Positions 4,755 to 57,745 of a DNA stretch of 64,000 nt are shown here, piece after piece. This DNA is from Guillardia theta CCMP2712. Taxonomy: Eukaryota > Protista > Cryptophyta. Each line of letters starts with the position of its first letter. Position 1 is the stretch's first letter. The position numbers and the translations under genes were made by a program. The notes under the pieces were generated by a model. The model saw only the letters and a list, made by a program, of their open reading frames with translations, was not told the DNA's origin and searched no databases. Location: assembly GCF_000315625.1 (NCBI RefSeq), contig NW_005434493.1, forward strand, positions 28,964 to 92,963. The letters run 5' to 3'.

Positions 4755-5818
4755 TTTACTCAAAGTGCTTTCCGCCAAAGTGAATTAAAATAAACTGCCT
4801 ACAGGGGGACGGCGAGAAGAGAAAAGACAGCGAGAACCAAACCCAATCCTGCCGACTGCTGTCCCCCAAACTTAACTGATACCTTCGCTTAACTGCGCGC
4901 AGGACAAGTCCCCCGCGCGGCCATGCCAGCGATGTCGCGGTGGCCGCCGCCGAAGGAATGAGACACATACCGGGATGCACCCGCGATGATGGCAGCGAAG
5001 GACAGGGAGGCCTTGAGCTGACGAAAGATCCTGGACCGGATGCGTTTGCAAGTCGGATCACCTGAGACGTCTTGCGAGGCCGAGAGACCATCCAGCGCTG
5101 CCGTTTCCTTGTTCGCCGAGCGATCCGCCAGCCACCACAGAAAGCGCAACGCATCGTCCTGCAAGAGGCCATCAGTGCTGGCGATGATGGGAAGAAAGGC
5201 CTTTGGCGGGACTGCATTACGATGCCCTCGGATCTTCCGCTGTGCTGCCGCTTGCAGTTTGCTCCGAGCCAGGTCCGGTATTCCATCATTGTCAAAAACA
5301 TGTGACATGCTGAAGTCCAGGATTAACCCATGCCATCCGCCTCCAGTAGCCATCAGTTGTGGAAGTTCGAAGTCCCCTACATGATGATCTTCAGGGCCGT
5401 GTTGGGAAACGTTCTGCCCTAGTAGTGCCGGGTACGCCTTGCCATGTGGACACGGCATCTCACTCCGGAATCTTTGATGAGGGTACTGAGGACGGCATTG
5501 CAGGGCTGCGGTGCCTGCAGGTTGCCATGTGTGTGGTCCCCCCAGGATGACGGAGAAGATGTCAGCGGCAGCCACCAAGCTGATGGGCCGGGCTGCTGCT
5601 CAAAGATCCCAAGGTTTGTACTTTCCATAATCGAGTGCCAAATCGTGCGCTGAGGGGTAAACTGACACAGAAGTTCATCAACCGGGTGGCCTGGTACCGT
5701 CTCGAAGGGGAGTAGAGAAGCTGGAGTGGTGTGCCAACAAAGATCTCTGGCGCTCAGAAAGGTGAGCCCGAATACTGCGGAACCGAGGAAACTCCGCTTT
5801 AACTTAACTTTGAGTAAA
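4755..5818 (-). mobile_element. Degenerate RLE-domain (CRE-like non-LTR) retroelement remnant bounded by inverted TTTACTCAAAGT ends
   Basis: Frame-shifted SAWWLPL..WGDHTH..CNAVLSTL (zinc-knuckle-like), then GDFELP..LILDFSMSH..AAQRK..FLPIIASTDG..LRFLWWLA (PD-(D/E)xK RLE pattern). tttactcaaagt at 4755-4766 and actttgagtaaa at 5807-5818. No RT motifs seen. Confidence 0.6.
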
Positions 5819-7356
5819 GTAGTAGTGCTTGCGGCGTCAGCCGCTCCTGACCCGACTCCCGGCCCGCCGCCGGCTTAGACTCTGATAGACTCTATTGGCC
5901 TTGCAAGACGGGTGGTTTTCAGAATCATGTACCCCGTGTTGGGGTAGGGTATCCTGAGTTCCAGAAATAGCGCAAGGGCCGCGCAATGTTCGGACTCCTG
6001 CAGCAGGTACGATGAAGGGAGAGAGAAACGCAACCGATGACGAGCGCGTAATGTCAAGTTTAACCCATCAAATACATGATAGTTCACGACGCGTAGAGAG
6101 CATTGATTTGTTGTCATCACTTGGATTCGTGATGATCACGCAAGTAGTTGTAAGTGATGGTGTTTGCACCAGTAAAATGCGATGTTTGTCCTGTGGCGGT
6201 TAGGATTGTTGAGAGAAGGGCATGACGATCACAGAGAATTGATGCTAAGATGTTCTTGATGTAATTTTGCGGTGTTCTTTATGTCTTGGAATGTGTGAAG
6301 TTAGGAGATAGATTCGAGACATGGTTTGAGGCCTTAGACCATTGTACTCGAGAGAAATTAGAAAGTTGTTTGAGTCAATACGATTCTCAGAGATGATAGG
6401 CTAATTGTTGATGTTTTTTTTATGCTCCATATGATCGAAGAAATGAGACTCTTCTCATGCAAAGCATTTGTATGTAGCAACATACTTGTTTTTATGCCAG
6501 AACGAAATGACCATCAAGCATCGAAGGGCTGATTTATAGTGTTTTCTAATGCCGTTACCGAGATCTTTGATGTTCTATATCACGCTCATGAAATTGTTAC
6601 TTGCATTCACTTACACTAGCAAATCTGATGATGTTGTAAACATAGCTTTTTAGTATAGTACCTGTCATGATAACAAGCGTGTCTTGGTCGATTTGAATAC
6701 GATTCTGAAGTTGCTTGTTACGACATTCTAATCTCAACTTCTTTTGATGTTTCCAAATGTTAACTTTGAATAGACCGCAGCGGCCTCCGAGTACGGTGGA
6801 CCTACACCCACGGCCCACGTTGATGCAGATCAGTATCTTGGATTCGTAGGCATCCCGAAGCCCCCTGTGAGATCTTATGCTGCCTGAAAGATCATTCGCC
6901 GATCCTTGACTTGTTCCGCAGCCTGGATACCTCCCACCTCTTGGCGCCAGCGCATACACCTGGCCGAACATCTTCAAGAACATGAAGCGCATGGACTACT
7001 GCGTAGACAAGTTTGACTTCTTGGGCAACAGGGTTGCTTGTATCAATAAGTTCACTGGACCCCTGCTGAGCTAAGAGTATTTGATCAAGCATAGACAATG
7101 AATCTTGCGGATGATGTTGGAGTACTCATGTAGGCGTTTCTTTTTGGAATTGGTTCGGGCAGAAGTTAAATACATCCAACTTGTGACATCTATGCACGAC
7201 AGATCGTCGTCAGCAACACTTTACACCCATACTTGATTCTCAACTTCTCCATCAATCATGTACACTAGTGATTTCAAAGTGATGCAAAAATTTGCGAAAT
7301 CCATCTTTTCAGCGAAGCTATATGTAGTATCCAAACAAAGTGCAAGGGACGGGCTT

Positions 7357-9471
7357 TTATCCCTCTTGTCCATACCTGTGATACAGTGTCAGGTGTTTTG
7401 GGAGCTTGCATCTTTGTACGCACTCTTTTGTGAATTTCTCAAATTCCTGAAGATCATTCAGACTGACAGAAGGTTTGCAGCGCGCAAGTGTTTTCTCAAA
7501 ATCTCTGTAGGAAACTGGAGGAGCAACCAACTTGTCTGCAAGGTTGCTACATAACAAACATCAGACCTCTTCATTCCCAGCACAGTTTCGACGTACTTCT
7601 TTGCAAGATCCATGATTGTCATCTCTTCTCCGTCTGGGTCACTCGGGCTACGAAAGATTAGATCAATCATTACACAACCGAAACGAACCTGCACGGCATC
7701 AACTTCTCCTCTTCAACGCCCTCGGGATTCTTGACCATGACTCGCTTGAAAGCCTGTGCGTCTTGGCATCGCCTCACCGGCTCCATAACAGCGTCTCGTA
7801 TCAACACGGCAATATCACTCCCAGAAAAGCCATCCGTTCTGCTGACAAGAGTCTGCAGGAATGATGTCAAAGGATTGATCAATCCGATGAATCAAGGCAG
7901 GCTATTCAAATTACATAGAATACCTGCAATTGCTCATGCTCAAGACCGGGCTTAGGGTCCATCTTGGACAAGTGAATATCAAGAAGCCTCCTCCTGCAAT
8001 TGCTTTAGGTGGAAGAGGGGATGACACCAACTTTGTTGCAGAACCTTGCTCGTTCATCAGGTAGAGGAATGTAAATTCTTCGTTGGCACCTTCGACGCAC
8101 AGCACTATCGATTGCCCATGGCAAGTTTGTGGCGCACAACACCTTGTGGTCGACAATGAATGATAACAATCAATTTGGTTAATGACACACCAGCAATCCT
8201 TCTAGAGAATTCCCAAGCCCGTCCATTTGAACAAGCAATTCAGTTTTTATCCGTCTTCCCGATTCACTGTCGCTATCGTTTCTACTCTGAGAATTGCAGA
8301 GTTATACATAATGCTGAACTGATATCAAGGATACTTACTGTGGCAATCGAATCAATCTCATCGATAAAAATTATGGATGGTTTTTGTTCACGAGCTGTTT
8401 CGAACAACATTTTTACCAATTTTTCACTTTCACCCAACCACTTTGATGTCAAGTCTGTATCAACCATCATCATTATATGCGCTTGACAGACATTCAAAGG
8501 ATACCAGCAGAAGAAACTGATAAAAAGGTTGCTGAGGCTTCCGTTGCAACCTAAAACAAGCACTGTAAGATCAACCCAGCATGAACAAGTATATTCTCAA
8601 GGATATCACCGCCTTAGCTAGAAATGATTTCCCCGTCCCAGGAGGACCATAGAGCATGATACCACTCCATGGCTTTCTTCCAGAACCCTGAAAGAGCTGC
8701 GGAAAATTGATAGGCAAGATGACCTAAACTATGAGTGTTCACTACACGATTGCGAGGCGCACAATAAACAAAACCGCTTCTTTGAGAGCTTCTTTTGCTT
8801 GTTCAAGGCCTGCAATGTCTTCCCAACGAACGTTTGGTTTTTCTTGGACGATGGCACTTTGTATCGCATCTCTACAGGAAAAATCAGGAGTTATGTGATT
8901 ACAATTTGTGATAGCTGTCAACCTCATTCGACCTTTCTCTTTCTCGCTGTCCCCTCCAGCCGGCACTGCTGCTTTCTTGGCTTTCTGTCATCGGGTGAGA
9001 AGCAGGTATCTTTCACAAGCATACTAGAACACACACCGGAGGATCCTTCAAAATCTCTTGAATCTTTTCTGCACGCTCCATATATCTTTCGACACAATAT
9101 TACATTTGTGTGAACCATCCAAGGAGAACAAGTTAAACACATACTCTTTTGCAAACTTTCGAAGTTGTGCAGTAATGTTGGGGTTCTGGACTTATACATA
9201 AGAAAAAAAAGTGCCATAAGAGAATTACCTTTTCCCATTTCATAGCTGTCATGAAGGTATCTAAGCATGTTCGATATGCATGAAGCGCTTCGTCGTATTT
9301 TTCTCGCTGATGAATTCATTTGTTACTGACTGATTTCCTTCCGCTTCTCTATCCATCTCTGACCTGTTTTTCCCAGTCTGCTGGATCCTTCAGAGCTGTT
9401 GCTTCTTTATCCAGCTCAGTTGCAATGCGAGCCTTTTCAATCGCTTTGGCTTTGAAGTCAACTGTTGCCAT
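7357..9471 (-). CDS. VPS4: Vacuolar protein sorting 4, AAA+ ATPase with MIT domain (multi-exon)
   Basis: [20 protein letters not shown], Walker [20 protein letters not shown], Walker [30 protein letters not shown]-terminal YGQEG*. Confidence 0.95.
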
Positions 9472-57151: not shown

Positions 57152-57535
57152 GGTTTGCGAAGAGGCAGATTCGCTTCGAAGGGGTACCCTATTTAGCACC
57201 ACACTAGGGGTGGTTTCATGTATGGGGGTAGGGGTAGAAAAATGTCAAAATCTCGGGTAGGTAGTCTGAAAGGCAATGCAGCATTCCGAAGGTCATTGTT
57301 TGCTATAAAGTACCGGTCATGGTCGGATAGAAGTTGATGTGAGGGAGGTAGGGGTTATCAAAGTTGAATTGACATAATAGGGGTGGGGTTATTGGGTAGG
57401 GGAACCTCCCGGAGGCTCATCCTTTACTCAACATACCCCTTACTGAGAGTACCGGGCCAGCGGGCCGGGCCGGCGAGTCACTGAGTGAGGAGTGAGGGCC
57501 AGGCCGCGCCCCGGATCGCCGCCGACAATTAGGTC

Positions 57536-57745
57536 TTTCTCAAAGTTAACTGATAAAAATCAGTACGAGGACAATCAGGAGAGTCGAGGAGGCTTGACCC
57601 TGACACTGTCGCACAGGCCCAACCTTCGGAACCGAACCCAATTACGGAAGTTAGAGTTAAGTTTCAATCATCAGAGTCAGTTTGGGGGACGGACAGCAGT
57701 TGGCAGGATTAGGTTTGGTTCTCGCTGTCTTTTCTCTTCTCGCCG
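57536..57745. repeat. Dispersed-family terminus (57536-57588) plus an oppositely oriented copy of the RLE-element 3' UTR (57680-57745)
   Basis: gtttgggggac..agcagttggcaggattaggtttggttctcgctgtcttttctcttctcgccgt matches the reverse complement of ~4809-4871. Confidence 0.85.

Follow-up and report, generated by a model that had tools for sequence, protein, structure and literature searches.

The reverse transcriptase (RT) of R2, a retrotransposon that lacks long terminal repeats (non-LTR), makes serial template jumps in vitro (PMC8594491), and non-LTR lineages with a restriction-like endonuclease are, as Utopia shows, widespread outside animals (PMC4640811). Partial copies in tandem or inverted arrangement, as known from Penelope-type elements, have been stated to be unobserved in target-primed reverse transcription (TPRT) of non-LTR elements (PMC8557442). 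Here we compare these systems with a family of dispersed repeats in the cryptophyte Guillardia theta CCMP2712, examined from a stretch of 64,000 nucleotides (contig NW_005434493.1, positions 28,964 to 92,963 of the forward strand; hereafter the window, whose own numbering is used for its features). An original prediction, made from the letters of the window alone, had described a short terminus and a second repeat block that recur as outward-facing inverted pairs and are tied to a retroelement with a restriction-like endonuclease; it proposed either a pair of long and short interspersed nuclear elements (LINE and SINE) inserting as head-to-head doublets, or an element with terminal inverted repeats (TIRs) that had captured the endonuclease gene. 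Our analysis indicates that the repeats are probably the tails of a single R2-like LINE, with stubs left by early abortion of reverse transcription, clustering that reflects a loose target preference, and a minority of junctions formed within single integration events.

Both repeat blocks are parts of a single element, a non-LTR retrotransposon of ~4.37 kb, in which they form the 3′ untranslated region (UTR) and the 3′ terminus. The family was gathered by searching the G. theta nuclear assembly (87.1 Mb in 669 contigs, the genome meant throughout) with window positions 4756–5818, which returned hundreds of candidate matches; 30 loci and five 10-kb stretches made up the set for copy comparison. 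Natural copies were used in all comparisons, with a copy of 4369 bases as reference. Read in the orientation of the window's plus strand, every copy begins with TTTACTCAAAGTTAAGTTAAAAATCAGTACGAGGAC... and then extends a variable distance, up to 4369 bases, into common sequence. The terminus, which in RNA-sense form is ...CUUUGAGUAAA, is identical at the end of every long LINE copy compared; in 26 of 28 cases the base after the coding-strand 3′ end ...CTTTGAGTAAA is a purine, and there is no poly-A. The 5′ limits of copies fall at reference positions 24, 723, 1378, 1718, 2507, 2588, 2663, 3219, and 3731, among others, with a common 5′ end reached by at least eight copies and no long terminal repeats. 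Non-LTR retrotransposons have as their hallmark a common 3′ end with 5′ truncation at varying points, and we therefore classify the element as one of them. The “second block” of the original prediction lies ~80 bases upstream of the terminus, inside this one 3′ UTR, and its proposed recurrence was confirmed: positions 4809–4864 and 57691–57746 are 96% identical over 56 bases, and a diverged copy of the 3′ UTR occupies 47978–48176.

Copies of the main subfamily are 97.5–99.8% alike, so this subfamily is young; the copy in the window belongs to an older subfamily, with 88% identity to the reference. Every copy has different flanks, the comparison of which gave no sign of site-specific insertion into 28S rRNA genes, and the ~1900 termini are dispersed across many contigs. 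The 3′ UTR RNA folds no better than shuffled sequences (z −1.4), and an Rfam scan of the whole element at E values up to 1 gave no matches, and thus neither a hepatitis delta virus (HDV)-like nor a hammerhead ribozyme. No description of this LINE family was found in a literature search, which did not cover Repbase or Dfam.

The open reading frame (ORF) of the element (1085 residues) contains an RT domain (PF00078, RVT_1; E values between 3e-8 and 4.5e-8, which pass the curated threshold). RVT_1 was the only Pfam domain found in this ORF, and N-terminal to the RT there is no endonuclease of APE type; the N-terminal 400 residues gave no zinc-finger/Myb Pfam match and no CCHH pattern, although a divergent domain is possible there. 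By sequence, the solved structure closest to the RT is that of R2Bm from Bombyx mori, with a weak match (E 0.021). Pfam gave no matches for the window ORF at 4889–5578, which corresponds to a C-terminal domain absent from Pfam, and the sequence of this domain produced only noise against solved structures; it was identified only through its relatives and its predicted fold. Among 1.8 billion representative proteins searched there were 65 relatives, each of them either a hypothetical protein of G. theta or an unnamed protein from a metagenome, and in the long ones an RT lies upstream of the domain (RVT_1 in P0080, P0093, and P0101). Their alignment columns consist of a C..C...H....C knuckle followed by GD, (L/V)xD, and K..K(H)..Y. 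For an AlphaFold model of the domain (predicted local distance difference test score of 75), Foldseek ranked R2 proteins first; re-alignment to seven R2 structures gave Z scores of 11.6–13.6 (root-mean-square deviation 3.1–3.8 over 171–186 residues), with the next structural tier, Prp8 and viral cap-snatching nucleases, at Z ≤8.4. The modeled fold supports assignment of the C-terminal domain as a restriction-like endonuclease of R2 type. The proposed tie between the repeats and an RT-bearing element with such a nuclease is upheld by RVT_1, by the CCHC and GD...D...K motifs, and by this predicted fold. A second G. theta LINE family (P0002, P0003, and P0010; GUITHDRAFT_122725 and _114595), with an RT ~30% identical, likewise has the CCHC and endonuclease domain.

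More than 1000 tail-only stubs of the LINE are present across the genome. The 21-base terminus, with up to two mismatches allowed, occurs 1890 times, and the reversed sequence, used as a control, not once. In a sample of 64 termini, each with ~75 bases of inner sequence, ~27% reach at least 69 bases into the LINE; the others (~70%) are broken off at 21–64 bases, with minor maxima at 33, 38, and 43, and the sequence past the break is different at each of the 64 sites. Because stub lengths vary and the sequence past the break is unrelated between sites, there is neither a SINE body nor an empty “target repeat.” The idea that the terminus is itself a dispersed target repeat was rejected on the same grounds, the inner limit varying continuously. 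The proposed LINE/SINE pair accordingly gives way to one 3′ UTR, not two families, with no recurrent SINE-like body among the sampled termini, most of which are solitary. The summed depth of contigs from a DNA run, a figure that does not equal copy number and may derive from the assembly's own data, is ~20 at the 5′ end of the element, 30–600 in the body, and ~8800 over the last 150 bases. In tandem arrays at C269:41974–42279, C7:901998–902149, and C35:508509–508644, each repeat consists of a single stub with a fixed spacer (periods of ~64, 69, and 34 bases; three to five units each), and stubs can thus seed minisatellites. Six termini, all in one direction, lie within 6.6 kb at L033:2130–8699.

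Individual copies and stubs tend to carry apparent target duplications of their own, 6–11 bases long. When the DNA just before the 5′ junction was compared with the DNA after the terminus in 25 elements, nine shared at least 7 bases across the insertion, against 6.8% in mismatched-pair controls; the window pieces showed none, and the downstream copy was offset by 1–16 bases. At L028, a stub of 25 bases that lies inside an older copy has an 11-base duplication around it. Insertions adjoin GTGAC/CAGTG-rich DNA: in the 40-base downstream flanks of 28 elements the count of GTGAC is 9 against 0.66 expected, and that of related five-base words 28 against 5 expected. The candidate target motif can be written GTGACTCAG. 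A dispersed target repeat, GTGACTCAGC, was tried and rejected; with 283 occurrences genome-wide and 254 for the control it is not over-represented, which points to a target preference rather than a target repeat. The 3′ junctions of L024, L032, L034, L023, L026, and others have 1–16 copy-specific extra bases between ...GAGTAAA and the downstream duplication.

The termini are strongly clustered, and in all three relative orientations. Genome-wide pair counts were made with exact 14-base anchors. At anchor gaps of 1–61 bases there are 6 outward, 13 inward, and 44 head-to-tail pairs, and at gaps of 63–123 bases 15, 8, and 28, respectively, so that termini up to 123 bases apart form 21 outward, 21 inward, and 72 head-to-tail pairs in total; 16-base anchors at gaps of 100–130 bases gave 5, 1, and 11. 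Our own estimate of chance, which assumes uniform placement of ~1400 anchors, predicts ~3 pairs in total, and the clustering is therefore about 40-fold. Random relative orientation predicts outward, inward, and tandem pairs in a ratio of 1:1:2, and the modest tandem excess over this comes largely from a few multi-unit arrays. Outward pairs are not favored, since the 21 outward pairs are equaled by 21 inward ones and stand beside 72 in tandem. Head-to-head doublets are thus not the rule that had been proposed, and the observed 21:21:72 comes close to the random neighbor orientation that the original prediction had itself set beforehand as speaking against its doublet model.

At LINE 5′ junctions, a stub lies within 150 bases upstream in 6 of 22 cases, against 1.3% in the control; five of the six stubs are in tandem and one, at the window copy 4809–5796, is inverted. 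Two of 18 LINE 3′ flanks also have a stub. Head-to-head pairs without filler occur at C33:95862 and C113:63735, some outward pairs are joined directly or with 3–19 filler bases, and many tandem stub junctions have 0–3 extra bases. A direct tail-to-tail junction was seen in only one of the 21 inward pairs; such joins are expected to be rare if every terminus always joins a target primer.

Repeated independent insertion is favored as the main source of the clusters because stubs show apparent duplications of their own, the flanks show a motif bias, orientations are near-random, and inward pairs enclose unique spacers. Reverse transcription would usually abort very early, leaving short stubs, and an endonuclease with a loose sequence preference would let insertions accumulate in the same short target-rich patches, beside older copies; repeated insertion into shared patches would give near-random neighbor orientations. 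A minority of junctions may arise within one integration event. Priming of the second target strand on the 3′ end of another RNA would yield a head-to-head doublet, such as 4755–5818, and internal priming on the same RNA a twin-priming inversion, such as 57536–57752; a jump of the RT to a new RNA 3′ end would leave directly abutting tandem stubs. The doublet model as the main mode, in which the two sides of a single DNA break would each prime on a separate RNA 3′ end, draws on the 21 outward pairs within 123 bases (<1 expected), several of them direct or with the short filler noted above, and on the 22-base inverted stub placed exactly at the 5′ junction of window copy 4809–5796. The equality of outward and inward pairs, both far below tandem, the single inverted stub among 22 LINE 5′ junctions, the mostly solitary state of sampled termini, and the lack of a surrounding target duplication at all four doublets checked make it very unlikely. 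That all clustering arises within single events, by serial jumps between templates and by double priming, in a Penelope-like manner and with no target preference, would account for the stub-to-stub junctions with 0–3 extra bases, for the enrichment of stubs upstream of LINE 5′ junctions, and for the complex mosaics at L020, L027, and L006, and the serial jumps of R2 RT in vitro (PMC8594491) are in its favor. Jumping cannot, however, yield inward pairs with unique spacers, and it is at odds with stubs that show apparent target duplications of their own, with the enrichment of the GTGAC-type motif in flanks, and with LINE 3′ flanks that are likewise stub-enriched; we regard it as a poor prospect.

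Capture of free short complementary DNAs at random breaks by end joining, without the endonuclease of the element, is compatible with near-random relative orientation, with filler bases at junctions, and with several loci that lack target duplications. It is highly improbable in view of the outer end, which is always the exact terminus with a purine next in almost every case, the near absence of direct tail-to-tail joins, target duplications commoner than in controls, and the motif bias of the flanks. A miniature inverted-repeat transposable element (MITE) whose terminal inverted repeats share or captured the LINE tail can be given next to no credence, even though pairs such as 47746–48176 resemble inverted ends and, at C2:123629–123835, inverted arms of ~60 bases reach past the 21 LINE-derived bases. 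The inner limits of arms vary from 16 to 88 bases, the interior of 47746–48176 is unique, most termini are solitary, pairs have no constant flanking target duplication, and the same terminus closes every long LINE copy. The TIR element with a captured endonuclease gene, the other half of the original prediction, is contradicted by the same variable arms and single-copy interior. The C2 locus itself is a 207-base palindrome with ~60 bases common to its arms, of which the LINE terminus accounts for the outer 21 alone; its appearance is that of an inverted duplication with flanking DNA included. Finally, an R2-type LINE whose integration restarts as a matter of routine on RNA 3′ ends, from whichever DNA end is free, leaving in a natural genome structures hitherto held to be a Penelope-like peculiarity as well as >1000 stubs, is a doubtful but more tenable proposition. 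If true, the source of tandem and inverted partial copies would be the RT, through its habit of jumping between templates, rather than the kind of endonuclease.

Several points weigh against repeated insertion by an R2-like LINE as the overall account. The pair counts come from exact-anchor pattern searches in three spacing bins rather than from full annotation, and the tandem counts take in several multi-unit arrays. Inward pairs with spacers of 10–44 bases fit no single-event scheme. For tandem stubs, nested insertion with target duplication and a template jump cannot be separated, because donor and target sequence are identical. The downstream duplication copy starts 1–16 bases past the terminus, an offset for which this account does not provide. 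None of the G. theta copies examined has an uninterrupted ORF, and any assignment of the RT to a clade would be tentative.

Within the window, matches among the pieces were taken from a dust-masked self-BLAST, and all pieces, like the stretches between paired arms, are free of assembly gaps, the closest of which is 1807 bases away. The exact 21-mer TTTACTCAAAGTTAAGTTAAA occurs at 18806–18826 on the plus strand and at 5798–5818 and 48156–48176 on the minus strand, with none expected by chance; the 45-base terminus first described has a single window match at up to three mismatches, at 18806. The listed terminus sites thus held at these three places exactly and at 47746 and 57536 in diverged form, whereas 4755 offers 12 bases only, 31644 is unscorable, and 43046 is weak. 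Three of the four outward-facing loci are real, each of them of a different nature; the fourth, 43045/43130, is unconvincing, and its supposed inverted partner at ~43120 shares only ~9 bases. No target duplication surrounds any of the three window pairs, or the doublet at C32:462992, as a unit.

The pair at 4755–5818 consists of a 5′-truncated minus-strand LINE copy of the older subfamily (4809–5796; reference 3219–4284 of 4369, 88% identity) and an inverted 22-base terminal stub on the plus strand (5797–5818; 100% match to reference 4348–4369), which directly abuts the 5′ truncation point of the copy. This junction would be the expected product if the second target strand primed on the 3′ end of another RNA. 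The LINE copy contains a minus-strand ORF of 229 codons (4889–5578) that is 86% identical to the family C-terminal domain and is a decayed remnant of the restriction-like endonuclease domain, not a free-standing gene. The copy's own 3′ end is replaced: 42 unique bases (4767–4808) stand in place of the last 85 bases of the family 3′ UTR and are followed by a minus-strand exact 12-base match to the extreme 3′ terminus (4755–4766; TTTACTCAAAGT on the plus strand). About 0.2 such matches are expected per window even with one mismatch allowed, and the 12-mer is a candidate mini-stub or displaced end of the adjoining LINE copy. A subfamily-specific 3′ UTR at 4767–4808 was considered and rejected, since the stretch is unique in the genome (a search with 4740–4830 finds itself alone). 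Right beside the 12-base motif ends a minus-strand ORF of 196 codons (4154–4744) with six 21-base tandem repeats at 4292–4471 (7 residues, EKEI/VEK-type); it looks like a coiled-coil host gene.

The locus at 57536–57752 had been listed among the outward-facing pairs. Its first piece is the 88-base 3′ end of a minus-strand insertion (57536–57623; reference 4283–4368, 82 of 86 aligned bases identical), and its second is an inverted upstream segment of the 3′ UTR on the plus strand (57669–57752; reference 4213–4298, 74 of 78 aligned bases identical), which has no terminus of its own and overlaps the direct part by 16 bases. The aligned segments have the layout of a twin-priming-type 5′ inversion. 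At 47746–48176, a 34-base minus-strand terminal stub (47746–47779; reference 4334–4367, 91% identity) and a plus-strand copy of the whole 3′ UTR face outward. This copy (47978–48176; reference 4209–4369) is diverged, with several indels and 124 of 151 aligned bases identical; it is truncated at the stop-codon region, and its terminal 21-mer is exact. Between the two lie 198 unique, GC-rich bases (47780–47977), and the pair may represent two separate insertions. A multi-copy MITE at this site was rejected, the interior being single-copy in the genome: a search with 47730–48190 matches elsewhere only via the ~35-base ends.

Other pieces in the window are single. A solitary 46-base 3′-terminal stub in non-LINE surroundings lies on the minus strand at 18806–18851 (reference 4324–4369, 96% identity). 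A degenerate candidate stub at 31644–31665 (minus), read by eye and without a match at up to three mismatches, is indistinguishable from chance. The minus-strand stretch 43046–43061 (AAATCAGTACGAG..) is a probable old stub fragment that agrees with the inner stub at 14 of 16 positions, 0.42 such matches being expected per window, and 58256–58267 (minus; CTTACTCAAAGT, one mismatch), a site absent from the original prediction, is a possible 12-base mini-stub. Trinucleotide tracts of GAG/CTC, CAG, and GAT are abundant in the window (e.g. 32590–32860 and 37150–37400) and swamp repeat finders. A seventh assembly gap, at 62198–62297, is missing from the program's list and lies outside the span of the pieces described here.

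Several LINE copies outside the window have features of their own. Directly upstream of a full-length LINE 5′ end, at L034:7134–7300, lies a different repeat, 167-base copies of which, 99–100% identical, occur in at least six other places. In the same locus (L034:3054–6273, plus strand), contigs from two presumed RNA runs, which belong to different studies, skip seven GT..AG stretches of 48–63 bases; the strand opposite the LINE ORF seems to be transcribed and spliced there. An antisense gene at this position was rejected, the spliced antisense product having no long ORF. At L027:155–2831 and L006:1–3415, the orientation of internal segments alternates within the LINE copies: L027 has its middle third flipped in place, and in L006 a 3′-truncated copy abuts an inverted 5′ end. 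These mosaics may reflect rearrangement, template switching, or misassembly. A 5928-base contig of JGI metagenome 3300013126 (L039) has 90% DNA identity over reference positions 425–4238 and an intact ORF of 1064 residues; its 3′ tail is unrelated, and the 3′ tail is therefore lineage-specific.

The family is not a new class of element. Its ~1900 short motifs and their pairs are the tails of one R2-like LINE and should be masked as such, not as MITEs, SINEs, or regulatory elements. For the study of retrotransposition they provide a natural collection of very early-aborted integrations, including junctions of the twin-priming type and head-to-head ones, which could be mined for how an R2-type enzyme starts, stops, and switches template in vivo. 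In comparison with LINE/SINE pairs and MITEs, the likeness lies in many short elements that end in a LINE tail, with some inverted pairs; the differences are that there is no recurrent non-LINE body and no fixed arm length, and that interiors are unique.

The resemblance to R2 (R2Bm; zebra finch R2Tg; 8gh6, 9nl3, and 9nl2) extends to the order of an RT, a CCHC knuckle, and a PD-(D/E)xK endonuclease, to the predicted C-terminal fold, which aligns to R2 residues ~896–1116 (Z 11.6–13.6), and to a fixed 3′ end without poly-A and with variable 5′ truncation. In contrast to R2, the G. theta family is dispersed rather than specific for ribosomal DNA, has no detected N-terminal zinc-finger/Myb domain or HDV-like ribozyme, is present mostly as stubs of 21–64 bases, and has only 9–13% sequence identity in the endonuclease region. 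NeSL, CRE/SLACS/CZAR, R4, Hero, and Utopia share the endonuclease class and domain order; these elements are mostly specific for spliced-leader, U2, or rRNA genes or for microsatellites, whereas the G. theta family shows a loose GTGAC-type preference. Like Penelope-like elements, it has partial copies in tandem or inverted beside longer ones, but tiny stubs make up most of its extra copies, and many of these show apparent target duplications of their own; its endonuclease is predicted to be of R2 type, not GIY-YIG, and no hammerhead ribozyme was found, which excludes it from that group. Twin priming of human L1 was reportedly described by Ostertag and Kazazian in 2001. L1 has an APE-type nuclease and poly-A, whereas the G. 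theta element has a restriction-like endonuclease and shows this arrangement on a scale of ~200 bases; the locus at 57536–57752 is similar in its layout, with reference 4283–4368 direct and 4213–4298 inverted across the 16-base overlap.

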